From the NCBI GenBank assembly GCA_002269645.1, contig NIVC01000907.1:124001-188000 (forward strand): a stretch of 64,000 nt of DNA, written 5' to 3'. The notes under the pieces are model-generated. The model had not been told where the DNA came from. It did no database searches and saw only the letters and a list, made by a program, of their open reading frames with translations. Every line of letters starts with the position of its first letter. Position 1 is the stretch's first letter. This stretch comes from Macrostomum lignano (taxonomy: Eukaryota). A program made the translations under genes and the position numbers. Positions 1,588 through 55,003 of this stretch are shown here, in pieces.

Positions 1588-3618
1588 CAGATTCGGGCGG
1601 AGGCACCCTGGGCTGCTTGAGGGCATTTTTCCTGGGCGGCGGTGTGGGAGACGATTCGGCCTGCTGCTCAAGCAGCTGCTGCTGCTGCTCCGCCGAGATG
1701 GGCGGCGGCGTGCCGTACACGTCATCGGCGCGGGCCGCGGCGAGCTCCGGCACCGGAGACGGCACCCGGTAGACCGAGGGGTCCTCGGCCGGCACGCCGT
1801 AGACGCCCTCGGCAACCAAATCTGCTTGCAGCTCGGCGGGCAATTTGTAGGCCTCGCTGTCCGCGTCATCGACCGCGGCCGGCTGCAACCGCGGCGGCGG
1901 TGGCGGCGGCGGTCGCTGCAGCATTGGCTGGGTGCTGAGCAGGCCGGCTGGGGGATGAGTGGCGATTATTGTGAGCACTCTACATATCGGCGACAGATTA
2001 GCCTCAATATAGTGAAATGCCCAGGCTTTTGCCACATATTTTATGGTGGTGGGGGACGAAGCCAAGAATCTTACAATTCCTAAATTATTTTGGGAATCGG
2101 TGCTATTAGCACTCATTTTAGCGCCGCAGACAGACATTCACTTTGGCGTCAAAGACAGGCACTCACTTTGGCGCCGCAGACAAGCACTCACTTTGGCGCC
2201 GCAGACAGGCACTCATTTTGGCGCCACAGACAAGCACTCATTTTGGCGCCACAGACAAGCACTCACTTTGGCGCCACAGACAAGCACTCATTTTGGCGCC
2301 GCAGACAAGCACTCACTTTGGCGCCACAGACAAGCACTCATTTTGGCGCCACAGACAAGCACTCACTTTGGCGCCACAGACAAGCACTCATTTTGGCGCC
2401 GCAGACAGGCACTCACTTTGGCGCCACAGACAGGCACTCACTTTGGCGCCACAGACAGGCACTCACTTTGGCGCCGCAGACAGGCACTCACTTTGGCGCC
2501 GCAGACAGGCACTCACTTTGGCGCCACAGACAGACACTCACTTTGGCGCCGCAGACAGGCACTCACTTTGGCGCCGTAGACAGGCACTCACTTTGGCGCC
2601 GCAGGCACTCACTTTGGCGCCACAGACAGGCACTCACTTTGGCGCCGCAGGCACTCACTTTGGCGCCGCAGACAAGCACTCACTTTGGCGCCGCAGACAG
2701 GCACTCACTTTGGCGCCGCAGACAGGCACTCACTTTGGCGCCGCAGACAAGCACTCACTTTGGCGCCGCAGACAGGCACTCACTTTGGCGCCGCAGACAG
2801 GCACTCACTTTGGCGCCGCAGACAAGCACTCACTTTGGCGCCGCAGACAGGCACTCACTTTGGCGCCGCAGACAGGCACTCACTTTGGAAATGCCTGTTT
2901 TGAAGATGATTTCCAACATATCGGCAAGCCTAGGGCTGATAAAAGACCTGTTAAACTGATGAAGAGAATTATTAAACGTAACTAACTCTGTTGGATCAGC
3001 GTGATGCCGACAGGAAACTGCTGGGTCTGCTGCGGCCGCATGGCCTGCTCATCATTGGACTCGACCTCCTCGGCCAATCCGCAGGCCAGGCTGATGCTGC
3101 GCGCCCAGTTCTCCATCTGGGAGACGCTGTCGGGCAGGAAGAAGTAGGTCCGGTCGTGCGACTTGTGCTTGGTGTCCAGCTGGAAGAATGGCAGCTGACT
3201 GTCCGCAGCCTTGTTGAAGTGCCTCGTGAGCCGGCTGGGGATGTCTGACAAGATACTGTCAGGCGGCATCACATGAGTGACAATGTCCTTGGCCTTGCCC
3301 AGGTCTATGGAGCCCTTGACCTTGGCCAGCTGCTTGTTTTTGTAGTACAGCAGGCAGTGGTTGATGCCGTTCGCGCTGCCGCTGATGCGGTACAGGACAA
3401 AGAAGCGGCGGCGCCAGCGCTGTTGAGATGGAGAGAAGCTGTTTAGGGGTGTGGAGTTGATAAAGCAAGAGTAAATAAAGCACAATACTGTAACTTACAG
3501 GCCTGAAAGCTTTAGGTCGCCTGAAGGTAATTAACTTAGAAGATGACTCAGTAGCAAATGGCGGTGACTTGAGCATCCACCCTTTTACTAGGGCCTTTTT
3601 CTCTTCACTGAGTTCCAT
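1588..3618 (-). CDS. GAB: Gab/DOS-family PH-domain docking protein; exons 3499-3618, 2987-3419, 1588-1947
   Basis: Spliced N-terminus VKGWMLKSPP...RWRRRFFVL...LLYYK...KGSIDL...RTYFF...QMENWARSI matches the Gab/DOS PH domain. GT-AG junctions are phase-consistent (0,1,1). Exon 3 has YxxP motifs (YKLP, YGVP, YRVP, YGTP) and a PTPPPRK SH3-binding motif. Confidence 0.88.
2109..2888. repeat. Intronic minisatellite, 25-bp unit GCACTCACTTTGGCGCCGCAGACAG, about 31 copies
   Basis: Visible periodicity; lies in intron 2 of the Gab gene. Confidence 0.95.
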
Positions 3619-5560: not shown

Positions 5561-6399
5561 TGGATGGATTTCTGAGGTAAGGAGGATCAGGGATGGATTT
5601 CTGAGGTAATGAGGATCAGGGATGGATTTCTGAGGTGATGAGGATCTGGGATGGATTTCTGAGGTGATGAGAATCTGGGATGGATTTCTGAGGTGATGAG
5701 GATCAGGGATGGATTTCTGAGGTGATGAGAATCAGGGATGGATCTCTGAGGTGATGAGGATCAGTGATGGATCTCTGAGGTGATGAGGATCAGGGATGGG
5801 ATCTCAAAGGTGGTGAGGGTCAGGGAATGGGATCTCTAAGGTGATGAGGGTTAAGGGAATGGGATCTCTGATGTGATGAGGGTTAGGGAATGGGATCTCT
5901 GATGTGATGAGGGTTAGGGAATGGGATCTCTGATGTGATGAGGGTTAGGGAATGGGATCTCTGATGTGATGAGGGTTAGGGAATGGGATCTCTGATGTGA
6001 TGAGGGTTAGGGAATGGGATCTCTGATGTGATGAGGGTTAGGGAATGGGATCTCTGATGTGATGAGGGTTAGGGAATGGGATCTCTGATGTGATGAGGGT
6101 TAGGGAATGGGATCTCTGATGTGATGAGGGTTAGGGAATGGGATCTCTGATGTGATGAGGGTTAGGGAATGGGATCTCTGATGTGATGAGGGTTAGGGAA
6201 TGGGATCTCTGATGTGATGAGGGTTAGGGAATGGGATCTCTGATGTGATGAGGGTTAGGGAATGGGATCTCTGATGTGATGAGGGTTAGGGAATGGGATC
6301 TCTGATGTGATGAGGGTTAGGGAATGGGATCTCTGATGTGATTTAGGGAATTCTCTGATGTGATGAGGGTTAGGGAATGGGATCTCTGATGTGATGAGG
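5561..6399. repeat. Compound minisatellite: about 29-bp GGGATGGATTTCTGAGGTGATGAGGATCA units grading into 31-bp GGGTTAGGGAATGGGATCTCTGATGTGATGA units
   Basis: Visible periodicity; the unit type changes progressively across about 5800-5870. Confidence 0.93.
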
Positions 6400-7295
6400 A
6401 AGACAATTAATTCCTTCTGTTGCTTTCAATCGAGTTTAGTTGAAGATTCTGATGGGTTTGGTCTTCTTAATTCCTTTGATCCGAGGCAATTGTCGGGCCT
6501 CAAAGCATAGAAATCAATCACATTTAGTGCTCCTGCCTCCAGCTCCTGTCAGATGGTCGGTCCCAAGGTAGCATACATACGTGCGGCAAGCAGCTGGTCC
6601 TATAGCTAAGAGAGGACAGCGAAGAGACGAGCTGGGCAAAAAGACAGAAATCAGCTAATCCGACGCCACCAACCCGTGCGCACTGGCTCACCAAACCAGC
6701 TCTCGCAAAATCGGGTTTCCGACTAGAATGGAACCTGAACTACATATAACCTGCAAACCAGTGTCTTTTTTCTTTCAATCTCGAGGTCATCATTATATCC
6801 GATAAATGGGACGCTGCTGGGACTGGATCGCATTGACCATGCACTAGACTAGGTCAGTTGAATGTTCTGTTACCGTAAATCATAAGACTCCTATATGCAG
6901 GCTTCTGGCCACAAATTTCACTACAAACTCTCCAATAGCGCTGATGCAGAGCAGTCAGCCCTCTGAGCTGGTGAATTCTTAGCTCGTCCATTAGATAAGT
7001 CGCATTGATGCCCGAGTCAGCACTAACGTACATGAAAGACTTGAATTCTGATTCAAATGATTGATCGATCGATTAGGGCACTGATTGGTCATTCGGTCCA
7101 CTGTAACTAATTTAATCCTCATCTTCAGCTTAGCTGCCCATCTGAACTCGCATTGCGAATCAAAGACAGAAAACAAATTAGCGGAACGGAGAGAACAAAG
7201 GCAACAATTGGATAGCACGAGCAAAACATCCCAAAAAACCCGAACAAAGGGATCAAGGAGTAGGGTACACGGCGACGGGGCGAGTCAGGCGAGCG

Positions 7296-8095
7296 CTAGA
7301 GAGGTGCCGACAGCACACGGTTGACCATTGGGCGCAGGAGGCGGAGGCAACCTCCCGACTGCGGCAGGTAGCGTGAAACGGCGCCGCTGCGCCAGCCGCC
7401 CAGCCGCTTGATCTGCTCCACGTCGAGGCCGCTGTCGAACGCCAGACAGGCGCCACCCCGTCGTAGAGAGTGGCCTGAGAAAGCTGTCGCCGCCCAACCC
7501 GCATCTGTCAGAGCCTGAGCGAGGCGGCGGTCGAATTGACGCGATGACATCGGGCACCAGCTTCCGGCGATGTGGACGCAAAACAGCCGAGTGAACGCCG
7601 GCCAGACCGCAGCTTGTTAGTCTGAAAATGCCGCCGCAGGGCTTGGACAGGACAAAGTGGGTGGCTTCCGGCCTCCTGGTAGTCTTGTCCGCATTGGTTG
7701 GCCTTCGATTGTCGAATTCGGAGTCTCCAGCACTGACTATCGGCCTGAGTGTCGCCGACGAGAATGGAGTGGCGCCCGCAGACATTTGCTTTCCTGAGAA
7801 GCGCCCAGAAGCAGCAGAGCACGGCGGCCCAAAAGGCGGCGTCTTCAGGGTCTCTTGGGTTCACCTGGTTTGCCAGTGAAAGCAGAACCGCCGGGGTGAT
7901 GGGGTCTTTCTGCTTGACTGAATGGCGGCTTGTCCGTTTGGAGCTCTTAACTGCCAGATCGATCAGGCCGGACTTGGTGATGTCGGGGAGTTGCGCCAGC
8001 TTGAAGCTCCAGCTGATGGCCGCCAGGTGTCCACCGAGGCTACCGGGTGCCACGCCGCGCTTAGCCAGGCGTCGCACATACTCGACCAAGTGCAC
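7296..8095 (-). pseudogene. Tyrosine recombinase (YR) of the retrotransposon, frameshifted near 7595
   Basis: FWALLRKANV (catalytic R), IRQSKANQ (K), PLCPVQAL, FSGHSLRRGGA (HxxR), GGWRSGAVSRY (W, Y). The two frames join if one base is added at GGC/CCG. Confidence 0.88.
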
Positions 8096-9420
8096 CGGGG
8101 ACGCCGCTAGTGGCTGAACACCTTCGAGGTTGCAGTAGCGCTGCCACTGTTCGAGGTTTGAAGCGTACGATGCCTCGTACTAGGAGCCCAGGCGTCGGCG
8201 AGAAAGCGAAGGAGCGGCCCGGGTAGGCGGGAGGCAGGAGGCGCCGGACCTGCAAAAGCAAAAGGGAGGCGGAGGCAGGGCAGAGCGCGTGGCGCGAGAT
8301 GCAGCAGGATTCAGCAGCTAAATCATGCAGGCTACGGTAGAAGCGGAGAAAGAAATTCTGCGCCCCGCTTCTAGAAGCAAGGCGAGAGGCCGGATCCGCC
8401 AGGACCTGGAAGGCGCCTGGAACGTGAAAGGCCCGCAGCCACAGACCCCACGCGTCGCAGGCAAGCGACAGCGTGTGCAGTAGCCGGTTGACGTCGTTAC
8501 ATGGCGAGCTGAGCTTGTTCAGCGCACCGACAGCCGCCGAGCTGTCGCTGTACACGACGATGTCCGCACCGGCGAAGCGGCCCGGGGCCGCAAGGATGCT
8601 GAGGACAGGCGTGATGGTCTCCTTAACGTTGATGTGGGCCGAAGCAAAACGGCCACCAGCGTCGTTCTTCCAGTTGATGTAGAGCCAGTCGGATTTATTG
8701 GCCTCCCGAACAATGCAGGCACCACCCGAGTTGCAGGCGTCAGTCTCGATGACGATCCTTCGAGCGTAGCGAGGCCAGATGGGCGCGCAGCCAACGGACT
8801 GAAGGCTTCTCCTCCACCAGTGCAGCAGCTCAGTGAGGTGCGGGATCAGCCGCAGCTTGTCACCAGGTCTAGTCGCCCGGCTCGCCAGCATCAGTAGAGG
8901 GCGGATGGAAGCTCGGCCTTTCCTGGTCACGCTGCTCACCCAGGACAGCTTGCCGCAGATCCGCTGAAGGTCGCGCTTGCTGATGGCACCGCGTCGATGC
9001 AAGCAGCTCCCAAGTGCGTCTTCGAGTGCACTGAGCTTGGCCGGTGGGATGCTCAGCATCCCCGACTCTGTGTCAATCAGGACGCCCAGGAAAACCGTGC
9101 GCCGCGACGGCCCGCTAGACTTATTTTCGTTGATGGTGAAACCGAGGCTCGTCGCCAGGCTCCTCAAGCTCTCGTAAGCCTCGACACAGGCCTCGTAGGT
9201 GCTCCCGGCCACCGCGAAGTCGTCGAGGTAGCCAACGCAGGTGAACCCGCGCATCATTCCGTCAATTAAAAAAGGCCCGTCGGGGTCGCCGCCCAGCTCC
9301 TTCGCCCAGGCATTTGCGTCAAGGGAGCCACTCGGATTGAAATTGATGTCGCGAATGGAGTAAAAACTTGGGATTAAAATTTGCGGCTGCCAGCTTGCCG
9401 GGGCCACTGGAGCCGCGGCT
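8061..9420 (-). pseudogene. RT/RNase H ORF with a large in-frame deletion of the RT N-terminal core
   Basis: YLDDF, LGFTINENKS, VFLGVLIDT, CGKLSW; RNase H IETDACNSGG, HINVKET, YSDSSAAV, HVPGAFQVLADPASR. The N-terminal W..L..DPD..FLIDG...GF segment runs straight into YLDD, so the intervening RT motifs are missing. Confidence 0.85.
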
Positions 9421-10397
9421 ATTCGTTTTTTGCCGCGTGTTGCGTCTCGCCGTGGTCCGAGCGCAAGCAGACCCGGCACGCATGAGTGTACTTGCAATTC
9501 TGGAACTTGCAGCCACCACGGGTGTTGAACTTGAGGCAGACGGGCGCTCCTTGGATCACCGGAATCTTCCTGTCCATGCGAGAACGGGCATGTTGTGGAA
9601 TCTGCTGCGGGGCGATGAGGTGCCGTGCCACCAGCGAGAAACTCGGTCGCGCCCAGTCTTGCATGCCCGCCTGCTGCTCTCTTCTAAATGCGTCGTCGAA
9701 CCACATGATCCTGGTGGTGTCGTAACCTGCCTCGACCAGCTCACCGATCTGCACATTGTACTGCAAGTACTGCCGAACGCCTTCCAGGTCGAGCTGTCCC
9801 CTAGAGATCAGGGCGTCGAGGATGCGCGCGTTGCCGACTATCCACTGACCGATTCCTGCAGCGATTCGGTTTTAGGCTGATTGGCGGTTGGATGCAGCAC
9901 CTTTTCCCTACGACTCGCCGACGCCGTCCGAGAGTCGCAACCGCAGAAATCCGCAACGACGAGTGGTGCCGCCCGTAGCCCTAGTTGAGCTACTGAGGGC
10001 TCGAGCCTGGTCTCGAACCCGGGACCTCTGAGCATACTCGGGATATTCATGTCGCTACTACAATCAGAGGGCTCATTAAGAAGCTGTTGGTCCACCTCAC
10101 CTGGTCTAAATCGGCCTTCCAGCTGCTGGCGCATTGCTGCCGTCTCCGATTCCAGGCTAGCTATCTTCCGCCGGAGCTCTACTAGGTCCAGCGCCTCCCC
10201 TGCCTCCAGCCGTTGTTGCTGCTGCTGCCGCCGACCTTCGCTGTCGGTCTCCGCGGAGTTTGACGCCGCTTGTTCCCGCCGACTAGCTGCTTCGCTCTGG
10301 TTCATCGCAGTGGAGAGTCTGCTGACCAGGTCTTTCTTGTAGCCGTGCGTGCTCAGGCCCCTATATCTCAATTCTCACGTAGCTGATTTACAGTCAT
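9419..10397 (-). pseudogene. gag-like ORF1: N-terminal SAP domain, coiled coil, conserved gag block and C-terminal Cys/His zinc knuckle; two frameshifts (about 10374 and 9860)
   Basis: MTVNQLRE(E)LRYRGLSTHGYKKDLVSRL after a 1-nt repair; IGQWIVGNARILDAL...YLQY...FDDAFRREQ; CLKFNTRGGCKFQNCKYTHACRVCLRSDH. Confidence 0.8.
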
Positions 10398-12043: not shown

Positions 12044-15000
12044 CTAGACAGCACAATGCTTCTTATGTTCTTTCCAGTTCTTCAATTGACAGTCACGATC
12101 ACAGAAATAGACCCTCTTACATTTTGCACAACGCTTTAGGGCCTCGCACTTTCCACAGTTCGCGCAGACCTGGAATTCAACCGGCTCAATTGAAGCCCTG
12201 GACCCTGTCGGAATTGAGCGTTCTGACATCGCTATTTGAAAAAAAAACTTAGGTACTTCTTTGGTGGGAAGTCATCATTGCTGTCAAAGCACGGCAGCCT
12301 CATACTATCAGCATGGAGTCCTTTATCGTAAAATTCCCGAGCTTTTTTAGTTTCCATCAACAAAAGGTACTCCGTGGCAATGGAGAAAAAAGCTTTCGGA
12401 ATGTGGCGGCTGTCTGGTTCATTCGACGAGATGTACTTTTCATATGCATCGATTACAATTTGACGATCAGCTCTACTGGCAGATTGATTGGTGCTAGTCT
12501 TAAGCCTTAGGGACGTCGCTTTGCCATAGAGCCAGTCAGGCTCCCATTCCAGCTCCAGAGCTTGCTCAAATGAGCGCACCGAGGCCATGTACTCACCACA
12601 GAATCCGTACAAATTTCCCACCAAGTTGTGGTAGTCGGCAACATCGGGATTCAGAGATGTACACTGCAGTGCCATTCGAAGCAACTCTGAATTACTACTA
12701 CTCTTACTTACAGTCTTGTAATGGATAATGACGTACAGTGCATCCGCGTCTCTCGGATTTCGTTCAAAGGCTTTCATTGCAGCAGAAAAAAGACTTTCAA
12801 ATGTCTCCATGTCTAACGGGAGAGGATGCCAGACTCTATCGGCTTGCCGGTACAGCCGAAACGCTGCATTTGTATTGTTATTCTTCAGTTCCGACTTCGC
12901 CTGGTCAAAAATATTTAAAGACTCGAAAAAACTTTCTGCTTTTTTCGAGCCCTGAGCAGCCCGAACTATCATCGTTGGCAACGCAGCCAAATAATCGAAG
13001 CCAAACGAACCCCTACCAGGATGGGGCGGATTTTCTTGGGCCTGCCTAAAGTTTAGAAACATGTTAGAAAAAGCCTCCTTAGTCTTTCCACTAGGCAAAT
13101 ATGACTCCATGAATCGATCAATTCGTTCAGGATAGGTCAGATCACGGATTGAAAGGGTTTTCGAAGCTTCAAACTTAACAACCTCGTTCGATAACTCAAT
13201 GAATTGATCAACAGCAGTCTGGCCCTCTGTTGAACGAAGAAGCCACCGATGAGCTTGAGTCACATCGCGATCGCAACCATGACCCAGAGCAAGAATGTGG
13301 CCATAAAGCTTTTGAGCATCTTTGTTTCCGCTCTCTGCAGCTACTCGAATAAAAGAGACGGCGTCCTCACTCTTTCTTTGATTTAAAAGGAGACATCCTA
13401 GTTTAAAGGTTGCTTCTTTATGATTTAAATCAGAAGCCTTTCTGAAACATTTTTCTGCCTGTGACAGATCTTTTTGAAATCCGCCATCTCCCGTAAGGCG
13501 ATTCATTCCCATCACAAATAACGCTTGCTTATCATCGGAATCAAGCATGCCTTGAAGGATTTTCTTGGACGCATCAAGAGATTCTGCACCGGAAGCACCG
13601 GAACACTGCAACTGCTGCAGTACAATGAGAGCGCCTGGAAGACCCTGCTTTGCAGCAGCTTTTAATAACCCAGCCGCTTTCGATGCATCCTGTGGTCCTC
13701 CTTCTCCTTTTACGAGCATTTCAGCCAGATTCGATTGAGCCTCCGCGAGTCCAAGGTCCGCAGATTTCTGGTACCAACAGCGAGCGGAGTTGAGGTTCTT
13801 CTTGCAGCCAGAGCCTCTGTACAGGGCCAAGCCCAGGTTGTTCATTCCGGATGGACAGCCATGCTCTGCAGATTTCAGAAACCACTGGAACGCGAGCTTG
13901 TCATCCTGGTCAACATTAAAACCATCTCTATAGGCCATTGCTATGGCATTTTCTGCTTCCGCGACACCAATATTGGGAAAAACAATATCAGCTCTAGTTG
14001 TTTTCAGATAGGGCTTCTGCGCAGCAGCTTCGTGACAAAGTTCGAAGTACTTTTTCGGGTTTTTAGACCATCCAGCTAACCCTTCTTTGAACATGACTGC
14101 CATGTTGTACAAGCCTTCTGCACTACCTCGTTCGGCAGCAGACTGGTAGATTTCCAGCGCCTTCTTCTCCTCCTCGACTTTACCTTTTCCTGCATGCAAA
14201 ATACGATGGGCTTTGCTGATTTCGTAGGCGGTTTGGAGATGGACCATGTTCATTTGATAGGCGTCCTCATCTGAGACGTCGGATGCCTGCTTCAAAAAAT
14301 GAGCTGACAAATTTCTCGAAACCTCCGGCGTTTTAATGTGATTGAAACCTCCGCCTACAGGATGCTCTTTAATTTTGGCATCGGCTACCAAAGCTTGGCA
14401 GTCCCTCGATCTTACAAGCAGAGTCTCATCTCTAGGATCGATCTTCAGACCATCCTTGCACGCATCCACAGCCTCCTCATACAGCTCAAGGTCGTACAGT
14501 GCTTCAGATAAAATTCGGTAAAACTTGACCTGCTGTGGGTTCAGTACGATGGCCTCCTCGGCGTCCTCACGAGCCAAATCGAACTTGCGCAGTTGGATTT
14601 CACACAGGGCGCGATTTGAGTACAGAACTGCCTCTGTTGAGTTTATGTGGATTGCTCCGGTGTAGCAGTTCATCGCTTCTGTGCACCTTAAGTTTTTGTA
14701 GTGCTCATTTCCTTCGATCTTCAGCTTCTCCCAGTCTTCGCCAGAAGTTCCAGCACAGCCAGTGAAGCTCATGATTTGCTCTCTGCACTCAGTCAGTCCC
14801 AGCAACGATGCCAGCTTGAGCAGGCACTCGACATCGTGCTCAAAACGGTTGACGTCAAAATCTTGATGGGAATAGCGGTTTCTTGTCGCCCTGGCTAATT
14901 GCATTGTTTTAAGAAGCTGATCTTGGCAACTCTGATCTGGTAAAAGCTTGGTTATTTGTGTCTCTACCACCTGCAAGCAGGTGTTGAAATCTGGTTGCTG

Positions 15001-15132
15001 TTGCTGTTGAAGTCCACAGTGCCTCTTTAGTAATGCATTAATCCCCTCTTGTAGCAAATTAATGGCAAAATGAATATTTGCAGCTGCTCTAGCATTTTTT
15101 ATGGTTTGAGAATCCATGCAAAGATAAGACAT
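12044..15132 (-). CDS. Single-exon HEPN(Swt1-like)-TPR-SEL1 repeats-TPR-zf-MYND protein; the MYND domain is separated by a frameshift at a T9 run (12239-12247)
   Basis: N-terminal helical domain with RNRYSH; three TPRs (WEKLKIEGNEHYK...LYSNRA); about 7 SEL1 repeats (e.g. GMNNLGLALYRGSGCKKNLNSARCWYQKSADLG); C-terminal TPRs; CANCGK...CAKCKRVYFCDRDCQLKNWKEHKKHC. Adding one T restores a single ORF. Confidence 0.85.
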
Positions 15133-16320
15133 GCATGAAAAAGTTGCATGGAATTTATTTTAGATACCTAATTTAAAGTAGCCTATGTATTTAGTCAAAT
15201 TAAAAGAAGATAGTTTAGCCTCTTTAAAATTGACAGCTCAGCTCCTTAGAAAATTTTTAAAATAAATGGTACAAGTACACCACTAAATACACAAGTCAAT
15301 GCTAGCTCCAAAAAATTCAATAAATTTTGGGGAAATTTTTACTTTAATTGGCTTAGCCTAGTATTGGCATACCAATATCATGCTTTGACATAAATATACA
15401 AGTGTACCATATTTGCTAAGCTAACCAACTATTGATGTTTGGATTATTAATATAAACAAATTTATTCTATATGTGTATATGAGTAATGTTAATATAGTTT
15501 GCCTATAAGATGCACAACCATTCATAAATAACTATGGTAATATATATTGCTATTCTAGAAATTTCTACAGTATATTATTTTAATTATAGCAAGTTAAATT
15601 ATGTCCAAAAGGAAAGTTCTGCCTAACTAAATTAATACTGTTTGTTTTTACACTATGACTCTTTCTTAGAAAAATTCTTAATTCACTCAATTTCTTAGAA
15701 TCTCATGGTAGTGATCAGTGCCCAAGTGGTAAGATACTTTCTAATTAAAAAAAACTATGTCCAAATTTATAGTGCTCCTAGAGATCATGGGTTTCTAGCA
15801 TAGGCTTCTAATCTACTAATATCTAATGTTTTAACACTTAATGCCTAATCTCAGTCTCTATGTCTTTTGAGCCTTTCTGGCTTTGGTTGCCTTGTACAGC
15901 TTTGCCCCTTTGAGCCTATATGGCTTCTGTCCTTAGACTCAACTTTTGTAAAAACTGAATAAGCAAAGATTAGTTCTCAGCAAAAATTTCTTTTTAGCAA
16001 GAGGCAAGCTAAGAATAAACTAGAGCTTGTCTCAGAATTGTTTTATTTCATGCTAGGTGAAGCCTTTATATAATAATCATGGGAGTTAAGGGGTGCAATA
16101 TAATTAGTGGGGACAACTTAAAACAAAATTATATGAATATTTTAACAAAACTAAGATTTTTAACAAATAAAACCCTATTAAAAAAGAAATTTTATGATTG
16201 GCCAGTAAATTAATTTTGCATATAATTGCTTATAATAATAGAATAGAGACTAGCCAGACCCTACTTGAATTCCTATAATTTTTTCTAGAAATTCTAGTTT
16301 TTAGATTATTCAATAGCAAA

Positions 16321-16511
16321 CAGTAGCGCAACCAGAAATTTTTTGAGGGGGGGGTAGATTCTGGAAGGTAAAGTCCCGGGAGGGGGGGGCAGAGGGGAGG
16401 TTCTGTTTTTGGCGAAAATTCGCTTGGTCCCCCCTTCGATTTTTTTTTGGGTCTCCGCCTAAGGGGGGGGGCAACTGCCCCCTTGCCCCCCCCACCCTGG
16501 TTGCACCACTG
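16321..16511. mobile_element. hAT-type MITE, 191 bp
   Basis: TIRs CAGTAGCGCAACCAG / CTGGTTGCACCACTG; perfect 8-bp target-site duplication ATAGCAAA at 16313-16320 and 16512-16519. Confidence 0.92.
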
Positions 16512-19238
16512 ATAGCAAAAACTTAAAATTCAAAGTGATTTAAAATTCAATCAAATAAAAAATTGCAACCTTGTATATTATTTTATTAATTAATATCAAT
16601 ATTAGTAATAGTTACTTTTATGCCTTGCCCTCATTATTTAATAATGTTTGTCTATTTATAAAGTCTTCTCTAAAGTTGAAGTCTTTTAGGCTTTGAAGTC
16701 TAACTTTTCTACAATAGTTATGTTTTAAAACTCACCCCACTAATGGACAAAATAAAATTCTTATAATATAGAATATTAAATTTAAACAATATATAATGTA
16801 CAACAGTTGTACTAAAAAGTTACATTTATCAATATAATTTAAATTTTGTATGTTCATCCAATTAGAAAAGGTAGTAATTTTTCTACTAAAAATTTTAGTC
16901 TTTTAGCTTGATGACATAATTGATGAAGCATTTTGATTTCTTTCTGATGTTCATTACTGTTTTTTTTCAACTTTTAACTTTTTTGACTGTAACAAAACAA
17001 TAATAATACTAATACTAAGACGAGAAGAAGAAGTATAGAGCATATAAAAAGTTAAATAATGAGTGAGTCTTGATCCACAAACATTATTAACTAATTCCCA
17101 AATCAATAAAAAGACCCCCGCTGGGCCCGCCAGGCTGCACGATAAAATTATCGCGAAAGCGAAAACTCGATCGTAACATTGGTGCTATTCTAATACAATC
17201 TTTTATAAAAAGTAAACTCATATGAATGAGAATTATTAAAATACCGAACATTTTTCACTGTATTCTGATTTTATTGATGTGACTACAATAGAAAAGTATA
17301 TACTTTGTTTTACCCTCTGAACATAAATTACGCAGAAATTTATGGAACCCAATCCAATTCTACTTTCACGACGGCATGACATCTATGATATATAGATGTG
17401 ATGTGATACATGCACATAGGTGAACGATTTTCCTACAATGAATGAAAGAAACGAGAAACTAAGTTTTGTAAAATTTGGTTTGGCATGCTGGTCCAATTGG
17501 TTTTGGTAACGTGGGGCCGCCGTCCTGTCTAGTGCCATGAGCTTGTGCATGCTACCCACAGTTTTATTAGGTGGTGCTTACCAGGGTGAGAGGGTTCTAC
17601 TATAGTCGCGTACATGTAAAGTGCAGTGAAGAGCTGCATGTTCCAAAGTTTTTTTCAGCCAGCTATAGTATTCATAATACTCCGATACTATCAGAATTAG
17701 AACGATTAAGATGTATGTTATATACCACACTTTTATTAATTGGTTTCCCCCTGAAACTTCTCCCGTACAATTAAGCACCTCTTCCGGCAACTTTGATTTC
17801 TGGTACATATATATGAACATGATCATGTACATGCATGTTACTATGTAAGCACTGGAATTGTGCTTACATCGAAGCGAAAAAACAACGGCCTCCTCTCGTC
17901 TCAACCGGTTCTATCCAGCCAGACCAGCTCTACACTAAAGGGCAGATAACAAAGCTGAGGTTCGAAGGCCAAGCCAGCAGCCTGCGAACGCGTGACACCG
18001 TAGACTCGCAGCAATGCTTTGGGGGGTGATATGGTTGCCTAACAACGGGACAGAGAAAAACTGCTCGAGCGATAACCCTGCCCCGCTCAAACTATGCATT
18101 TGTGACGTTGTCAGTTTAAGTGGTCCCGAAAAGGGCCGTTGGACTGTAGCCCCTCTACAATTTCTCCAATCGTTTATTTTAACGTTTACTTGTAGTAGTG
18201 CCCAATGAATTTGTACTTATCGCTAACTCACTGCGCATTTTGCTATCCTTTCATGCGACCGTAGAAAACTGGCACGATCGATAATTTTAAGATCTTTAGC
18301 CAGCCAATGAAAACCGCTCGTGCTTCGCGCTACCCCCCCCCCTCTGCGCTCCTTTATTAACCCTCGCCTGGCGGGCTGGGGGGCTCCACTTGTTTTTGCG
18401 TTCTTGTTCGCCGCCCTGTCTGGCGTGTCTAGCCTTGTCTAGCCTTGTTTTCCTTCTCTCTGTCTGGCTGCCTCGAGCCTCCTTATCTCACGCCACGGCT
18501 GACGCCAATCTCGCCACTGCTACTCATTGCCTCCACTGTGCTCATCGCCATTGTCCATCACGTTACGTCGCCATTGCATCATTCGTCTGCCACTTGACTT
18601 CATCTCCAAATTATATTCAAACCCATTGTTGCAGCCGCCAGTGCCCAGAAGGCTATAGTTTGTGTATTGACAGTAATAACCAAGCCTAATATTGATATTA
18701 ACAATAAAAACAACTACGGCAGTTTCCTGCCTTTATTGCCAAGTGCTCCGCTACACAATCCGCTTTGCAAGAGTTGACTTCAACTTATTTTGGAACTACG
18801 ACTTACTGCAACGCTTGTCAAAACGGCCCTTTTAAGGGTCCTAGCCATAGTTAGCCGCTACGCCACATCGTGACACATTGCTCTTCATTTTGTCAACTAA
18901 ACCAGTTTGCTTGCTTGACTATAAAATACACTGTCTTGAATAATTTTCGGCAGAGAGATTCGGAGATGTGAGCCTCACACTCATAACAGGGCCCTCAGAG
19001 GCCAGGTGTGTTCGAAAGTCTTTCTGACTTGTGAGCAGATAACAGGAATAAAAACTGTTATATACTATAAAATGTACACTAAAATGTATACGCGGCAGTG
19101 TCAATTAAAACGTTAAATTGTTCAAAAAAGCTCAAAACGATTATCAAAAGGTTATCAAGGTAACGTAAACAGGGGCAGTGAAGTTTAACTTTATTTTTTG
19201 CTAGCTTGCGCAATTCGTGCTTTAAGATCACATTATCT

Positions 19239-22795: not shown

Positions 22796-25489
22796 TTAGG
22801 CGCGACAATTCTTCTTGTGCTTTTTCCAGTGGTTTACTTGGCAGTCGCGACCACAATAGTAAGAGATTTTGCACTTGCTGCAGCGCTGCAGGGCATCAAG
22901 TTTTCCGCAGTTCGCGCATCGGCAGTTGCTCGACTTGGCCGAAGAAGCCGAACTCGAGAGCAGCGGATCTTGCAAAATGATTTTCATCAACTTCTTTGGA
23001 GGAAAGTCGTCGAGTGACTCGAAAACCGGCAGTCTTATTTCAGGACTCTCGGCACGGAGACCCTTTTCAAAATACTCTCGGGCTTTTTCAATGTCCGTGA
23101 TGGAATAGCTCTCGGCTAGGCTGTAAAAAGCCTTTGGGACATTGTGACTGTCTGGCTCACTGGACGAAATGTACTCCTCGTAAGCTTTGATCACAGCTTT
23201 GCGATCAACTCCATCTTGTAAACGTAGAGAGGACGCTTTACTGTACAGCCAGTCCGGCTCCCATTCAAGCTCGAGAGCTCGTTCAATCGATCGATGAGAT
23301 GCAATATAATCGCCATTAAATGCATGCAAATGGCCAACTAGGTTGTGGTAATCGGCGACATCAGGATTCAGATGAGTGCACATCAATGCCATGCGAAGCA
23401 GCTCTGCAAGGCTGCAAAGTTTCAAAGCCATGTTGTAATGTACTATAACGTACAGCGAATCTGCGTCTCTCGGGTTTCGCTCGAAGGCTTGCGTTGCAGC
23501 AGAAAATAGACGCCTTAATTTCTCCAAGTCGACTGGAAGCGGGTGCCAGACTCTATCAGCCTGCCGATACAGACGAAACGCGTCTGATATGCGATTAATC
23601 TCTAGCGCCAAATCTGCCTGGTCGAGTAGATTCAAACAAACGAAAAATTTCTGCGCCGTTTTAGATCCTTGAGCAACTCGCTTTGCCATCATTGGCATTA
23701 CGGCGGACAGGTTAAAATCCGAGTAAAGACGCGCGGGGTGAGGCGGGTTCTCATGACTATTCTTGAAAATACTGAGCAAGTCTTTAACACCCTGTTTTTC
23801 CTCGCTTGACACCAGAGATTCGGCATATCGTTCGATTCGCTCAAAGTATGTTAGCCCGCTTTTGGAGAGCTTCTCAGCAGCTTCGAACTCGATAACTGCA
23901 GTGGAATACTTGATAAGTTCGTCAAGATCAGACTGAGGCTGCTTTGAACGAAGCAGCCATCGACGAGCTTGCGACACATCGCGTTCGCAACCGTGACCAA
24001 GAGCCAATATGTGACCATAAGTCCGCTGAGCATCTTCGTTTTCACTGTCTGCGGCTTTTCGAATATAAATTGCGGCGTCTTCATTACGTCGCTGCTGCAG
24101 AAGAAGCCTTCCAAGCTGAAATGTTGCTTCCTTGTGATTTAAAGCAGAAGCCTTCCTTAGGTGCTTCTCCGCCTCCATCAGGTCTTTAGTGAAGCCGCCT
24201 TCTCCCATAAGGTAGTTCATTCCGATTACAAACAGGGCTTGCTTTTCGTTTGAGTCAGCCATTTGCCGAACGACCTTGGTTGAAGCATTCATTGATTCGG
24301 CACCAAAAGCCCCAGAACGCTGCAGGTGCTGCAATGCCAGGAGAGCGCCTGGAAGGCCCTGATCAGCAGCAGTTTTAAGCAGCTGTGCCGCCTTGAATGC
24401 GTCTTGTGGTCCTCCCTCTCCCTTTACGAGCATTCCCGCCAAATTAAAAAGAGCTTCCGACTGACCGAGGTCTGCAGACTTCTGGTACCATGAGCGGGCA
24501 GATTTTAGGTTCATTTCGCAGCCCATGCCATTGTAAAGTGCCAGACCTAGATTGTTCATTCCTGATGGACAGCCATGCTCTGCAGCTTTCAAAAACCAAT
24601 TGAAAGCAAGCTTGTCGTTCTGGTCAACGGCTAGACCATCTCTATAGGCCATTGCTACAGCGTTCTCTGCTTCTGCAACGCCAATGTTGCGTAAAACAGT
24701 ACCGATTGTTTTCACTTTCAAGTAGGGCTTCTGTTCCGCAGCTTTGCGGCACAAATCGAGATACTTCTTCGGGTTGACGGCCAGTCCGGCCATTCCGTCT
24801 TTGTACATTAAAGCCATATTGTACAGACCCTCCGCACTTCCACGCTTGGCAGCGGATTCAAAGATTTTAAGAGCTTTCTGCTCGCCGCGCACGGTACCTC
24901 TGCCTGACAGCAAAATTCGGTGAGCTTTCTTGATTTCTGAAGCAGTCTGCCAATTGGTACTGTCCATCGTTCCTACGTCGTCCGGTGAAACGGGCCCTTG
25001 TTTCATCACGTGATCGGCAAGACTTTTCGAAGCATCTTTGGTTTTCAATTGATCAAAGCCCCCAGCAAAAGGGTGCTCTTTAATTTCGCGGTCTATGATA
25101 AGGGCCATGCAATCTCGCGCTCTAACATTTAGAGTTTCATCTCTAGAATCGATCTTCAGTCCATTTCTACACGCATCAACAGCCTCTTTGAACAACTTAA
25201 GGTTGAATAAGGCTTCAGACAGAGTTCGGTAGAACTTCACCTGATTCGGATCGATTGCAATGGCGTCCTCAGCGTCTTGACGTGCAAGATCGAATTTGGC
25301 CAATTGTATTTGACAGAGGGCACGATTTGAGTACAAGGCGGCGACTTTTGAGTTGATGCCAATTGCTTGGGAGTAGCAGTCAGCTGCCTCTGACCACTTC
25401 ATGTTTTTGTAATGTTCATTTCCTTCAGCTTTAAGCTTCTCCCAATCTTTACTTGAATCACCAGCAACAGCAGTGCCAGAAAGTGGCAT
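22796..25489 (-). CDS. TPR-SEL1 repeats-TPR-zf-MYND protein, about 897 aa, single coding exon; paralog of 12044-15132 without the HEPN domain
   Basis: Uninterrupted ORF collinear with the paralog from DWEKLKAEGNEHYK onward; in-frame MYND CANCGK...CSKCKISYYCGRDCQVNHWKKHKKNC. Acceptor TTTTTCAG at 25498 precedes ATG 25489 (MPLSG), implying a 5' UTR intron. Confidence 0.92.
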   Translation of the reverse strand: MPLSGTAVAGDSSKDWEKLKAEGNEHYKNMKWSEAADCYSQAIGINSKVAALYSNRALCQIQLAKFDLARQDAEDAIAIDPNQVKFYRTLSEALFNLKLFKEAVDACRNGLKIDSRDETLNVRARDCMALIIDREIKEHPFAGGFDQLKTKDASKSLADHVMKQGPVSPDDVGTMDSTNWQTASEIKKAHRILLSGRGTVRGEQKALKIFESAAKRGSAEGLYNMALMYKDGMAGLAVNPKKYLDLCRKAAEQKPYLKVKTIGTVLRNIGVAEAENAVAMAYRDGLAVDQNDKLAFNWFLKAAEHGCPSGMNNLGLALYNGMGCEMNLKSARSWYQKSADLGQSEALFNLAGMLVKGEGGPQDAFKAAQLLKTAADQGLPGALLALQHLQRSGAFGAESMNASTKVVRQMADSNEKQALFVIGMNYLMGEGGFTKDLMEAEKHLRKASALNHKEATFQLGRLLLQQRRNEDAAIYIRKAADSENEDAQRTYGHILALGHGCERDVSQARRWLLRSKQPQSDLDELIKYSTAVIEFEAAEKLSKSGLTYFERIERYAESLVSSEEKQGVKDLLSIFKNSHENPPHPARLYSDFNLSAVMPMMAKRVAQGSKTAQKFFVCLNLLDQADLALEINRISDAFRLYRQADRVWHPLPVDLEKLRRLFSAATQAFERNPRDADSLYVIVHYNMALKLCSLAELLRMALMCTHLNPDVADYHNLVGHLHAFNGDYIASHRSIERALELEWEPDWLYSKASSLRLQDGVDRKAVIKAYEEYISSSEPDSHNVPKAFYSLAESYSITDIEKAREYFEKGLRAESPEIRLPVFESLDDFPPKKLMKIILQDPLLSSSASSAKSSNCRCANCGKLDALQRCSKCKISYYCGRDCQVNHWKKHKKNCRA

Positions 25490-27856
25490 GATCCAGACTG
25501 AAAAATAGCAAAAATGGTAAAAAGTTTTCATTTATAATCGAAGTCCAACTATTTGAATTATGAAGTTGATTTTCATGGATAGAGACATAGAAATTACGAG
25601 TACAGATAAGCATGGCACTTAAAAGCACAATAGCCTGGACACAGGCCAAATAGTAAATGACTGCATTTTTAGGTGGTCATAATGCACTTGTGTTGCTGTG
25701 CTTTTGAGAAATATTTTGCACTAAACCAAGAAACCATGATATAGAGTTAGGGGATAAGCTTTAGGAAATAGTTTTATGAAGAGAAAGAGACTTCAAAATG
25801 CTTACTAACTCTTTTACCAGTGGTAGATGATGTATTTTAAATAAATAGCTAAAATCCAAGGGCCAATCTTTGCAAAAGGCAGATAGGAGCAAAATGTTTA
25901 TGGAAAAAGGGAAGTGATTCATATTATAAGAAAGATATATTGATTCTGCTGTTGCCTTTGGTAGTTTGTATAATGCCCAATAGGAGCTATTCCTTTACCA
26001 TGGCAAAGGAATAATAAGTTATAATTATATAGCTCATACTAATAAATACAAAAAATAATCAAGACAGATAATCAGATTTGAACTAGCAATGAAAATATTT
26101 AGTGTTGTTTATTTTATTTCCAAATCATGGTTTCCAAATATATTCTCCTAGAAGCACTCTATATGAACATATAATTGCTCTTTGAATCGAGTTGAAAATA
26201 GCATATAACTAGCAATCAGCAACCCCAATTGGAGAGGCAACAGAGAGTGAAATAATTTTTTAATAAACTATATGTGTAGCTTCTGACCTTATATAGTCAC
26301 TATTGCTAGTATCATAAGGAAAATGATGTTTAAAGCAAAAAAGCATTAGCACTGAAGGCCAACTATCTAGCCTAAGATATCAGAATCTCCTTTGAGCTTC
26401 CTTTTAAACCATGACTTAACCCTAATTCTCCATTTAATCTACCTTTAACTTGACCTATCAACAACTTCCAATTGATGTTTGGCATCTCAGTGACCCCCTC
26501 TATGAGCCAAAGCATTTTAGCAATCCCTTTATGACTATTGGCATCTATTTCACCTATGAGCCTTGATATTAAAGAATTTTCAAAATGAACTTTGACATTT
26601 AGCAATTCAGCAGTACCCTTTAAGCTTATAAATATTAGCAGTTCTCCTTTATAAGCCTTAATATCTTAGTAATTCCCCATTAGACTTAAAATTTTAGCAA
26701 TTCCCACCTTGATATCTTAGCAATTCCACTTGTCAAGCTTGATATTTCAGCAATTCCCCTTGTTAGTCTTGACATCTTAGCAATTTAGCAACTCCCCTAA
26801 TCATACTTAGCATTTTAGTAATTTCCTTTATATTAGTCTTAAGTCTTGATATACAAAATAATTCTCCTATTTGCCTTGATATCTTAGAAAATTTCTCCCA
26901 TAAGCCCTAATTTCTTAGCAATTCACTATTTAACATTTTTGATGATATTTCTTTTATATGTAATAGGCTTCATCTTTATTTCTTAAAAAAAAGCAGTTTT
27001 AAAATTCTACCAAATTTTTATACTGTATAAATATTAGAAATATTTTCTACTCATATATATTTTTGTATAAATTTGTTCTGAACAATAAGGTCAATTCAAG
27101 AATAAAACTATAAATAGGAACAAGCTGCAAGCCAAATTAAATAAAACCTCAAAGCATATTTCATATCTTTCTCAATTAACTTGTTTTGTTTGAGTTTTAA
27201 TATTATCAAGAATAAAATTAATCAAGACTGATAACCAGATTTGAACTAACAATGAAAATGTTTAAACTAAAGTGCATTATAATTTTTTTATTTTGAAAAT
27301 ATGATTCTTTCCAACTATATTTTGGAGAAAAAATTGATAACCAACTTTAAGGCAATTGCCTATTTTTATGATCTAATTGTTTTAGCAATAGAGTAATAAA
27401 TAGAATATAGATATTAGCGTATGAATAACCCCAAAGATTGGGAAAATAAACCATTCAAAATGAGACCCCCTATAGGAAAAAGTTGTAAAACTGTGGACGA
27501 TGTTCAGTGCAACTACTATTCAACTTATTATCCATCAATTTTGGAGGTAGGGTAGGTGTCAACCTTCATCGCCTCTCATTGGCTGGCACCCCAATCACTA
27601 GGTGATCAATACGCATCTATATAGCACTTGGTGCGCATGTACTGCAGGCGCGTGGCACCAAGCGCCATCTAGCCACAGGCACACCCTCCCAAGCCACAGG
27701 CACCCCAAGCCGAAGGTATACTCTCCCAACATAAGTGTATACTTTCCCAATATCTAGTCAACAATACATACTCAACAGGCACCCTCTATCTCACGCCCTG
27801 CCCTCACCTAGCCTCTCCCCCCTCTCTCACCCACATCTCAACTAGCGAAATCAAAC

Positions 27857-30734: not shown

Positions 30735-32872
30735 TAGAAATGAATATAGAGTCTTTTTGATACAATTTTTATCAGAATCAAAGTTTAGTCAAAAAGTTTT
30801 CTGAAATTTTTTAGTTATACCATATCAGAAATTTTTCTGATTTAAAGATCTGCAAGCTTCAATTAAACCTAATAATCCATTTAAAAGAATAAATTATTAG
30901 ATAGATACCTACTAACCTACCTAGATAGATAGATAAAGACAAACCATTTGTAGTATAATGGATTATAATTGCTTTTTTAATGAGTTAAATATAACATAAT
31001 AATTTGTATTAGGCCTAAGCATAGTTTTTTTAGAAATAATTTCTATAGCAAAAATTATAAAAATAGATATATCTTTAATGACTTTATCTTGCAAACTGAA
31101 ACCATGCAAATGTGGTATCAAACATTTCCAGCGACATTACAAGTTCAAATTGCAGCTCTGGGATATCCTGAGGAAGGCCAGCTTTCTGTTAGTACTTAAA
31201 CTAGGCCCTAGTCTGCCTCTCCTCTCCATGTGGGACTTTTTAAAATGCTATATAACGGATGACGAATAAGTTGACTAATTTAAGCAAAGATTGTTCTGAG
31301 CAGTTTGCAAGTCGCTATTATGATGTAGCTCGATATAACAAAATGAATGAATCGAGAAGTGCAGATTATGCCTGTAAAGTTTTTTGGCGTAATAATTTTA
31401 TTTACCTAAAAATACTTTATACATAACAATTACAAAAAGCTAGACATCTAGACAAATAGCTAGACAACTGGACAGTAAGCTGGAAATTCGGACGAAAGCT
31501 AGGCGAATTAGCCCCCGATCGTGGGTTCGCCCAAACCTATGCTTACAAGTATTTCTGAAATAAAAAATTAAAAGAATTGGAAAACTAAGGGTAGTCATAG
31601 GGAGGGTTGGTCTGGATAAGAAATAAGAATTCGTCAGGTTCATAAATTTTCATGCATGACACACTATATGTACAACAAATGTTCGAATATGGTGCAGATA
31701 TTCAGGTAACCAAGGTAAACTAATATTTTCGGGTTATTTTCGCATTTCAGATATTTAACTAATAAATGAACTGTGTTGAAATCAAACCTACCCAAAATTC
31801 ATATATCTCCACATCGACGCTACGTAAAACATGATCGATGAACTTCTCTTTTTGTCTGCACTTGCATCAACTGCAACCCCCATTTTAAACTTCGAATAGG
31901 TTTTGAGCTACTTACCAGTGTTATAGAGAACACAATCAATAGTGCAAATAGTATATAGATCGCGGTTTTTTTAGGATGTGAAGTAAAGATGCGAAACCTT
32001 AGAAGCTAATTTTAGAGTGCTATTCGATGGGCAGTCATCATAAAGTACTGCCTATAGCTTGCTCGGCACATGTACATGTATACTTAACATACTATTACTA
32101 TATATATATAGCGAACAAATTTGTCCACACACACAGACACACAGAGTTTTGATTTTTATATGTAGAGATATATACTATATTACTGAAGATTGAAAAAACA
32201 ACACTTGCTAGTTAAAACTCTGATAGTAGGATAATTTACTTCATGCAATAGCCACTGTAAAATGTACACAGTACGCACATGTACATGTATATGGTACTAG
32301 CTACAATTTAATACACATGTGTATGTACATGTACACATACATGCGTGTGGTGATATAGCTACATTGTACACATGTTAAACATACATGTAACTGGGAATTT
32401 TATTTTTATTTAATATATCTGAGAGCTATAGGCCGGCCTCTGTCAATAAAAGCACTTTCACAAGTTGTTCATAAATTGAGACAGAAAAGCAGCTTATATA
32501 CATGCAGCTTAACTAAACCCGCATAGATTGGCATCGGCATGAGGAGTGGAATTGTCTGGAAAATGTCCCCCCCTCCCCCACAGAACAATGGGGCTCAATT
32601 GGGAACTATTTGCAGCTGTTGCATGCATGGGAAAGTTTCAGCAACCCGTTCTGACTAGTTTAGTCCTGTCTGACAGGTGTTAAAGCAGCAGGTACATCTA
32701 CATCAAATGCATGCTGGAATTCCAATCGCGCATAAGAAATTGGGTGAGAGACGCAAGGTTTGCGAAGAATATATTGACTTAAAAATTGGGAAGGCGCCTG
32801 GATGAAAATTTTCTGCTCCACTTCAACGGGAGAAACAAGTCCAACTTTTCATCAGCTAAAACTAGTTCTGAA

Positions 32873-36239: not shown

Positions 36240-36805
36240 TTTGTGTGCTACCAGCTGACAGAACGAATTTTGGTATTGTTGTAGTGCAAAACTAAGTGTG
36301 GCGTGATGCGATCCGAGCGTATATACCGGCAAGAGGGTAGCACACGCAGCCACCGCCTGGGCCCAGATGCCAACAGTGTCAATTCTTTGCTGCTTAGTCT
36401 CTTTCACACAATGGATAGCGGCAATTAAGGCGAGACAAGCCCTGCCCACTATGTAATATAACAGAAACAAAAATAGCAATTGAAACTCAAAGAGGGCCGC
36501 CCCCGCTGCGCTCGAGTGTGCTATAAAGGCTACAAGACATTGTTAGCTATTGAAATTGTGTGTTTGCTCCATAAAACCTCCCAGAGTGATTTGCTCGGTC
36601 GCACGTAGCTGCTGCAGCGGCCCAGCTTATCTCTACAAATAGGCTCTTGCAGTTTGGCAGCAACTCCCGCTGAGGCAGGTCTGCGGAGACGCCCGATGCA
36701 GCGCGCATTTCGTTTTGAGAATGCAAAAAGGTCACACAAAAATAAGCTTGAGTAAAAGGCTGATGGGGCAAATATGGATCCAACCAAAACCCGTTATTTT
36801 AAAGA

Positions 36806-37706: not shown

Positions 37707-37894
37707 TTACCAGACTGCAATTCGTGCAGTGCATTGTTGGATCCTTTTCCATCACACGCAGGCGCTTCTGAAACGCATTGAGCTGGCTATGGTTCCGTCT
37801 GGACTAGTTTATACCAATTAAATAGTTAATATTGAGCAGCCAGTCTTTACATTCATTGCGCTTGTACCAACAATATAAATTTAAATAAATTTTC

Positions 37895-54951: not shown

Positions 54952-55003
<52 letters not shown>

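Follow-up and report, generated by a model that had tools for sequence, protein, structure and literature searches.

We analyzed a 64,000-nucleotide stretch of the Macrostomum lignano contig NIVC01000907.1 (GCA_002269645.1; positions 124,001 to 188,000 of the forward strand), hereafter the window, and focused on a gene on its reverse strand that an earlier sequence-only reading had interpreted as a Swt1-like HEPN RNase domain fused to a TPR-Sel1-TPR-MYND scaffold. The gene is a single uninterrupted open reading frame (ORF) of 966 amino acids (12232-15132, - strand, stop codon included). The positions assigned in that reading were exact, with residues 1-125 at 14758-15132 and the motif R84..H89 at 14866-14883, and all of the N-terminal peptides that it quoted were found in the translation. 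The full-length AlphaFold2 (AF2) model was all-alpha, with a mean predicted local distance difference test score (pLDDT) of 84.5, and placed in order a HEPN domain (residues 8-124; 14761-15111, - strand), three TPRs with a capping helix (residues 133-256; 14365-14736, -), a disordered linker (residues 255-276), a Sel1-repeat solenoid (residues about 296-657; 13162-14247, -) and C-terminal TPR-like helical repeats (residues 714-944; 12301-12993, -). The solenoid comprises about nine Sel1 repeats, visible both as Pfam Sel1 matches (9.1e-31, five stretches) and as AF2 helix pairs; Pfam also returned TPR_1 (2.1e-14) and several TPR families, with TPR_17 and TPR_8 at residues 822-861 of the C-terminal region. 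Foldseek with the full-length model retrieved Sel1-repeat proteins (top E 2.6e-12), SEL1L, Ctr9, Ski3, and TOM70, that is, generic Sel1/TPR solenoids, whereas a PADLOC scan of the protein gave no match. The protein lacks a signal-like hydrophobic N-terminal stretch and appears to be of the cytosolic type. From the homology, fold, and conservation evidence that follows, we concluded that residues 8-124 very probably form a Swt1-like HEPN domain (PF18731) of the Abi2/Swt1 clade.

The motif by itself carries little of this argument. From the R and H content of the 966-aa protein, 1.2 Rx4H motifs are expected and two are present, so that the bare motif is not above chance. One is R84-N-R-Y-S-H89, directly followed by Q90; the other is RNLSAH at residue 273 (about 14299-14316, -), which lies inside the low-confidence linker and is an example of a bare Rx4H arising by chance. 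Because Rx4H alone is no better than chance, the case for a HEPN domain rests on homology and conservation. The same expectation is the first point in favor of regarding the N-terminal segment as a mere helical bundle with a fortuitous motif, and searches with the window sequence alone added a second: Pfam matched no family in the first 130 residues when the whole ORF was scanned, nor in residues 1-138 scanned separately (E<=10), and hence gave no direct PF18731 match of this copy, the closest paralogue scored only 13.2 bits against PF18731, whose curated gathering cut-off is 27.5 bits, and the isolated domain, used as query in a word-indexed homologue search, found no relatives. With the full-length query, however, this search recovered about 30 relatives of the same layout, and we aligned the N-terminal regions of 19 of them (alignment A1). 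Scanned singly, 15 of these 19 N-termini matched PF18731 at E<=1 (best 1.7e-10), and three scored above the cut-off (41.7, 40.4, and 29.5 bits). Among 1.84 billion representative proteins, the A1 profile matched only 103 at E<=0.001, which argues for a small family. When 96 new matches of this profile were scanned, HEPN_Swt1 was found in 36 (best 3.3e-36), Sel1 in 13, MYND in 4, and DUF499 in 2. The two proteins combining HEPN_Swt1 with DUF499 are bacterial, carry the HEPN domain at 73.1 and 68.4 bits, and are classified by PADLOC as HmaC, an AAA+ ATPase belonging to a candidate anti-phage system. Furthermore, hhalign aligned A1 with a profile of eight bacterial-type Swt1-like HEPN domains (A3) over 106 columns with 99.0% probability (E 6.5e-18), and in this alignment the D-F dipeptide of the family fell on an invariant bacterial D and RNxxxH fell on RNxxxH. 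Membership in the Swt1-like HEPN group thus rests on relatives and profiles rather than on a direct Pfam match of the window copy.

The predicted fold is consistent with this assignment. An AF2 model built on A1 folded residues 8-124 into four core helices and a fifth (8-39, 49-63, 67-88, 94-110, and 114-124) with a mean pLDDT of 85.7 and a predicted template-modelling score (pTM) of 0.79, in line with the helical N-terminal domain of approximately 120 amino acids that had been noticed from the sequence. In the canonical HEPN layout, the motif is placed where helix 3 ends, and an acidic residue with a described role lies in helix 2 (PMC3710099). The modeled domain fits this arrangement, in that R84..H89 closes helix 3 (67-88) and D48 of the D-F dipeptide (14989-14991, -) opens helix 2. 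Structure-based and PDB-based comparisons pointed the other way and must be counted against the assignment. Foldseek of the HEPN model found no HEPN entry in PDB (best E 2.6, template-modelling score <0.4) and no significant match in BFVD (best E 0.37). Against PDB sequences, the A1 profile gave only weak matches to non-HEPN helical proteins and no solved relative, the A3 profile gave HepS as its sole hint (E 0.09), and phmmer gave no match. The sequence-only reading had suggested a Foldseek comparison with HEPN folds and had named the lack of a HEPN match as grounds for withdrawing its proposal, and such a lack is formally what we observed. We attributed it to limits of the method and of the PDB's coverage of this clade, and judged it to be outweighed by the profile evidence; because small helical bundles are hard for Foldseek, the absent structural match weakens the HEPN assignment only slightly. 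In view of the Pfam matches of the relatives, the profile-profile alignment, and the conservation of both the motif and the helix-2 Asp across the family, the chance-bundle explanation is effectively refuted and we regard it as very improbable, and the HEPN call made from the sequence was borne out.

Conservation of the predicted active site is extensive. Among the 114 family domains retrieved, R84 and H89 of the RNRYSH motif, which the earlier reading had picked out, are both intact in 96, position 85 is N or H in 98, and Q90 is retained in 103; D48 is retained in 99 of 111. In alignment A1, no member departs from D48, F49, Q90, or E102, and most members carry RNxxxHQ; among 20 full-length members (alignment A4), R84 and H89 are conserved in at least 90%, and D48 and Q90 are invariant. 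The window copy keeps all of the family-conserved residues (D48, R84, N85, H89, and Q90), and its R84-N85-x3-H89 has the form by which the HEPN superfamily is recognized, namely Rx4-6H with a polar residue after R that is conserved in relatives. Compared with three M. lignano paralogues, the ratio of nonsynonymous to synonymous divergence (dN/dS) was 0.23-0.32 for the HEPN segment and 0.25-0.31 for the whole gene. The putative catalytic R-N-x3-H of the window HEPN is thus intact and, as these ratios indicate, under purifying selection.

The family is distributed patchily. Its animal members were found in M. lignano (several paralogues), in the rotifers Rotaria and Didymodactylos, and in the tardigrade Paramacrobiotus metropolitanus; its oomycete members were found in Aphanomyces stellatus, Phytophthora infestans (PITG_12794, named "MYND-type domain-containing protein"), and Pythium oligandrum; a fungal member was found in the blastoclad Paraphysoderma sedebokerense; and the remaining members came from other assemblies and metagenomes. 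From oomycetes to rotifers, the relatives share a common N-terminal layout and the same start point. Given this shared layout and the continuity of the ORF, the HEPN domain can be taken as part of the protein. IMG/VR viral contigs held no family member, and the sole match in GTDB species genomes was weak and of Sel1 type; on these grounds a giant-virus or bacterial origin of the family was rejected. As judged from the sequences recovered, the family is eukaryotic and patchy but not animal-specific. The architecture occurs in flatworms and rotifers, two of the groups in which the sequence-only reading had suggested a survey, but the description of an animal protein was too narrow, since Phytophthora, Pythium, Aphanomyces, and a blastoclad fungus carry the same architecture. 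We found no paper describing the combination of HEPN, co-chaperone TPR, Sel1, and MYND, or giving an account of PITG_12794 or PF18731; the earlier reading had likewise not recognized the architecture as a characterized family. The UniProt name of the Pythium relative is already "Swt1-like HEPN domain-containing protein"; automatic annotation recognizes the domain in some relatives and misses it in the Macrostomum copies.

Comparison with known HEPN systems placed the domain more precisely. Swt1-like HEPN domains correspond to the Abi2/Swt1 clade of Anantharaman et al. (2013), within which an "active" Ava_2192 type is recognized (PMC3710099), and the DUF499/HmaC-type bacterial relatives retrieved here correspond to this type. 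The window protein resembles them in its homologous domain, in R-N-x3-H, in the helix-2 Asp, and in the N-terminal place of the domain before a large regulatory module; however, the partner there is an AAA+ ATPase and here a TPR-Sel1-TPR-MYND solenoid, and the family genes are eukaryotic and lie outside restriction-modification-like operons. In Table 1 of that survey the eukaryotic Ava_2192-type copies are "all solos" and the TPR-Sel1-TPR-MYND architecture is unlisted; HEPN-TPR fusions are known from the DZIP3, C6orf70, and LA2681 families and from bacterial Swt1-like proteins with STAND ATPases (PMC3710099). Two other HEPN identities were rejected. A DZIP3/hRUL138-like domain, which had been suggested as a comparison alongside the Swt1-like one, gave no PF18738 match at E<=1 in the window protein or in the 19 relatives, and a KEN identity was discarded because the window protein matches neither kinase nor Ribonuc_2-5A families in Pfam. 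Swt1 itself is a nuclear-pore pre-mRNA surveillance endonuclease of yeast and human, and its HEPN region is the one for which PF18731 is named. It combines a PIN RNase with a HEPN dyad that is judged inactive (PMC3710099), a precedent that speaks against catalysis by the domain studied here. The window protein differs from Swt1 in having no PIN domain and a single N-terminal HEPN with an intact motif. Orthology with Swt1 was rejected for want of a PIN domain and of a HEPN dyad; the label "Swt1-like" is thus apt for the HEPN domain but not for the protein as a Swt1 orthologue.

In M. lignano, the family genes are intronless and form a tandem array. The window contains two copies, the HEPN copy described above and a tandem paralogue of 911 amino acids (22796-25531, -) with TPR, Sel1, TPR, and an in-frame MYND but without HEPN; tblastn with the 19 HEPN domains over the window found a single HEPN only, and none at this paralogue. 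The HEPN-less gene shares 98.3% DNA identity with a copy on contig NIVC01000528.1 (L009 8001-10691), within 8 kb upstream of which no HEPN was found, and its dN/dS relative to the window HEPN copy was 0.15. With a near-identical HEPN-less copy at two loci and this low ratio, the effector-less form appears to be maintained. NIVC01000528.1 also carries three further HEPN copies, all with RNRYSH, whereas dead-motif paralogues occur elsewhere in the M. lignano genome (P0004, RDRHSR; P0005, TSRLST), and a third dead-motif family copy is P0025. Relative to one of the copies on NIVC01000528.1 (L002 copy a), the TPR unit had a synonymous divergence (dS) of 0.05 and the middle of the gene one of 0.48, and dS reached saturation at the C-terminus. 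When both L002 5965-9051 and 15365-18025 were compared, the TPR unit had a dS of 0.05-0.13, the HEPN one of 0.2-0.8, and the middle one of 0.5-1.3, and the C-terminus was saturated. Such a mosaic of synonymous divergence along the gene suggests gene conversion among array members. The L002 copy at 15365-18025 is truncated and stops short of the C-terminus.

The dead-motif and HEPN-less copies bear on whether the HEPN head acts on RNA at all. It could instead be a non-catalytic RNA-binding or protein-docking module, in which case the protein would be a scaffold or co-chaperone adaptor bringing RNA or ribonucleoproteins to partners. Such a function has been proposed for the HEPN of Swt1 and for human sacsin, and the Swt1 dyad and some sacsin HEPNs are conserved without the motif (PMC3710099). 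Several members of the present family, M. lignano paralogues among them, have likewise lost R and/or H while keeping the rest of the domain, and the maintenance of the HEPN-less paralogue implies that the scaffold has value without catalysis. If catalysis were dispensable, however, it would be costly to retain the helix-2 Asp together with R, N, H, and Q, as the window copy and 84% of the family domains do, and the nearest prokaryotic relatives are of the "active" Ava_2192/DUF499 type. We therefore consider a purely non-catalytic head unlikely, and expect with somewhat better than even confidence that the window HEPN, as predicted from its conserved residues, is a catalytically competent RNase.

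The MYND finger raises the separate question of whether this copy is complete. A 61-aa ORF (12044-12229, -) lies in another frame than the main ORF and encodes an intact MYND zinc finger (12053-12166) that has all zinc ligands and scores 40.6 bits (E 2.6e-10) with zf-MYND, whose cut-off is 22.7. The frame change occurs at the end of the main ORF, where a T9 run (12239-12247) is followed by an in-frame TAG (12232-12234); a tenth T in the run would allow read-through (...KKYLSFFFQIAMSERS...) into the MYND finger and give a single ORF of about 1030 amino acids. The L002 paralogue at 5965-9051 (NIVC01000528.1; 1028 aa) has HEPN, TPR, Sel1, TPR, and MYND in one frame, as do many relatives. Thus, of the scaffold originally proposed, the TPR, Sel1, and TPR parts are present in the ORF, but the MYND is frame-shifted in the window copy. 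A tiny intron was rejected as the cause, the sole in-frame GT..AG option being 17 nt; because an intron of this length is not plausible, a T9/T10 indel offers the simpler explanation. The T9 run and TAG ahead of the MYND ORF represent either an error in the assembly or a frameshift that arose very recently. The frame change weighs against our interpretation insofar as the copy may be truncated or decaying: the gene could have been recently disabled, its MYND stripped by the T9 frameshift and the locus no longer functioning properly, and the truncated copy, the HEPN-less copy, and the mosaic dS are features of birth-and-death evolution in which such a loss would be at home. However, both ORFs are otherwise stop-free, the zinc ligands are intact, and a one-base homopolymer assembly error would look exactly alike; moreover, a protein without MYND may still work, as the relatives P0012, P0024, and P0025 naturally lack it. 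We thus doubt that the window copy is a disabled gene.

The first TPR unit offers a possible clue to the partners of the HEPN head. The best match of residues 133-256 among PDB sequences was TPR2B of Hop/STIP1 (5.9e-23), followed by SPAG1, RPAP3, SGT, CNS1, Toc64/OEP64, CHIP, PP5, and TOM70, so that nearly all of the unit's best solved relatives are Hsp70/Hsp90 co-chaperones with an EEVD clamp. In an alignment to Hop TPR1, whose carboxylate clamp K-N-N-K-R we take to be K8, N12, N43, K73, and R77, residues K138, N142, N173, and K203 match the first four clamp residues, and these four are kept in 16-17 of the 20 family members compared. At the fifth position, the equivalent of the Hop Arg is Ile207, and an Arg lies one residue off at 206. 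This displacement tells against a chaperone-binding function: with the fifth clamp Arg one residue out of register, EEVD binding is not assured. We consider the first TPR unit, from its sequence relationships, a candidate docking site for the EEVD tails of Hsp70/Hsp90, and a reasonable lead. For the proposal of the sequence-only reading that the repeats might sense a ligand and thereby license cleavage, this unit is the only specific lead. In PP5 and CHIP, a TPR clamp is joined to a catalytic domain. The window protein resembles these and the other EEVD-clamp co-chaperones (Hop/STIP1, SGT, RPAP3, SPAG1) in the TPR unit, with four of five clamp residues in register, and differs from them in the displaced Arg and in its predicted catalytic partner, an RNase domain, which is undescribed for the class. 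HEPN domains are also joined to chaperone-system or TPR modules in sacsin (Hsp90-like, DnaJ, and a C-terminal HEPN), C6orf70/ERMARD, and DZIP3 (HEPN and TPR); these proteins, however, belong to other HEPN families (HEPN-T, C6orf70, and DZIP3) and have different partners and domain orders. For the sacsin HEPN, a role in the RNA-level response to unfolded protein has been proposed (PMC3710099).

Features of the array also invite an immune interpretation, in which the protein would act as an effector against viruses or transposons, its family having expanded lineage-specifically, and its repeats would recognize a pathogen- or element-derived ligand. Ankyrin repeats are the ligand-recognizing repeats of RNase L. 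Tandem expansion, diversification, and the presence of dead-motif and effector-less copies are typical of conflict genes; the nearest bacterial HEPN relatives sit on the anti-phage ATPase HmaC; the distribution in micro-eukaryotes is patchy; and the M. lignano genes are intronless. One member, P0021, lies in a gene-dense assembly (L003 6423-11039; GCA_040384225.1, JAWVHC010001808.1), 28 bp downstream of a 516-aa gene that combines a kinase with Ribonuc_2-5A, that is, with KEN, the HEPN of RNase L/Ire1 type, with genes for RNase_H, NOV_C, zf-PARP, BTB, and GmrSD_C close by. The kinase-KEN RNase, RNase H, NOV_C, and GmrSD_C neighbors would suit an immune role; however, because the arrangement is not repeated on the sister contig L007, we treat the kinase-KEN neighbor as an aside. 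TIR, caspase, or kinase heads are also known on generic Sel1 proteins, but the similarity of these proteins to the family is repeat-driven. The idea of swappable effector heads (kinase, TIR, or caspase with Sel1; P0031-P0037) on one scaffold was accordingly rejected, the similarity being confined to generic Sel1 repeats. Further points against an immune role are the overall dN/dS of 0.15-0.31, which, at this resolution, gives no indication of positive selection, and the lack of members in IMG/VR viral contigs. We regard the immune interpretation as a live alternative of rather low probability, and as one compatible with a function in stress. A family member associated with a kinase was observed separately: in L008 (706-3082; GCA_025491035.1), a HEPN (RIRNTYSHQ) and TPR unit is followed in the same ORF by a casein-kinase-1-like kinase, with Sel1 remnants downstream, so that a kinase was either inserted into a family member or fused with one.

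Elsewhere in the window, retroelement-like ORFs (7285-9880, -) were seen 2-5 kb downstream of the HEPN gene; one of them (8061-9497) matches RVT_1 weakly (E 5e-05, under the Pfam cut-off), and the neighboring ORFs have no Pfam match. Three host genes were also noted. A PH-domain exon (2982-3485, -; E 1.5e-09) is syntenic with a PH gene beside the array on the other contig. An amiloride-sensitive sodium channel (ASC) extends across two overlapping ORFs (32786-34665, +; 7.4e-12 and 1.7e-13), and a cyclic-nucleotide-binding-domain fragment is present at 39593-40099 (-; E 1e-04). Long ORFs of short tandem peptide repeats occur on both strands (2043-2985, 36732-37755, 43648-44498, 45040-48054, 54422-57548, 59665-60126, and 62847-63920); these tracts are satellite-like or tandem-repeat DNA, with a composition profile of strong GC/AT skew.

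Taking the locus and the family into account, we favor the reading that the protein is a latent, dimerization-dependent endoRNase gated by what its repeats bind, to which we assign a probability of roughly 0.6. A single HEPN is inactive until two pair, as in Cas13, Csm6, RNase L, Ire1, and HEPN toxins (PMC3710099), so that activity should depend on dimerization or clustering. On this model, the HEPN head would be a latent, metal-independent endoribonuclease, the pairing of two heads would create a composite Rx4H site and hence activity, and the solenoid and MYND would set the timing of pairing through the partner proteins that they bind. Since the first TPR unit is of co-chaperone type, tethering to Hsp70/Hsp90 is suggested, and this unit would probably dock on their EEVD tails. 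The chaperones might then hold or position the RNase, and release or clustering under proteotoxic stress or infection would be expected to lead to the cleavage of RNA and an arrest of translation. Paralogues whose motif is dead (RDRHSR, TSRLST) or that lack HEPN could serve as non-catalytic partners or competitors. This logic would be that established for RNase L and Ire1 and proposed for sacsin, minus the kinase. The proposed likeness to RNase L and Ire1 lies in a repeat or sensor module joined to a HEPN RNase and in ligand-driven dimerization; KEN, however, is a different, permuted HEPN family accompanied by a (pseudo)kinase, and the analogy is functional only. The step of gating by partner or chaperone binding is tentative, and we hold it with less than even confidence. 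The fullest form of the proposal is a kinase-independent counterpart of Ire1/RNase L, in which a HEPN RNase would be held on Hsp70/Hsp90 by the EEVD-clamp TPR and the Sel1/MYND solenoid and freed or clustered to dimerize when proteotoxic stress or infection titrates the chaperones, with dead or HEPN-less paralogues as inhibitors, and in which horizontal transfer would have carried the module among oomycetes, blastoclad fungi, rotifers, tardigrades, and flatworms; as a whole, we think this scenario improbable.

Prokaryotic immune systems employ HEPN RNases as central effectors, as in Cas13, Csm6, abortive infection, and toxin-antitoxin systems. In eukaryotes, to our knowledge, only the KEN type (RNase L and Ire1) and Las1 are understood. 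RNA interference (RNAi) knock-down is routine in M. lignano. HEPN with TPR-Sel1-TPR(-MYND) is a small family without known description and functionally uncharacterized, and it offers a eukaryotic HEPN of seemingly catalytically competent form, within a defined and conserved architecture, in an RNAi-tractable organism. The locus carries natural controls in the form of dead-motif paralogues and a HEPN-less paralogue. For annotation, Pfam misses the HEPN in the Macrostomum copies, and current labels describe only TPR/Sel1 hypothetical proteins. If the chaperone-clamp lead were true, the family would provide a direct physical link between Hsp70/Hsp90 and RNA cleavage, a link that has so far been hypothesized only for sacsin.

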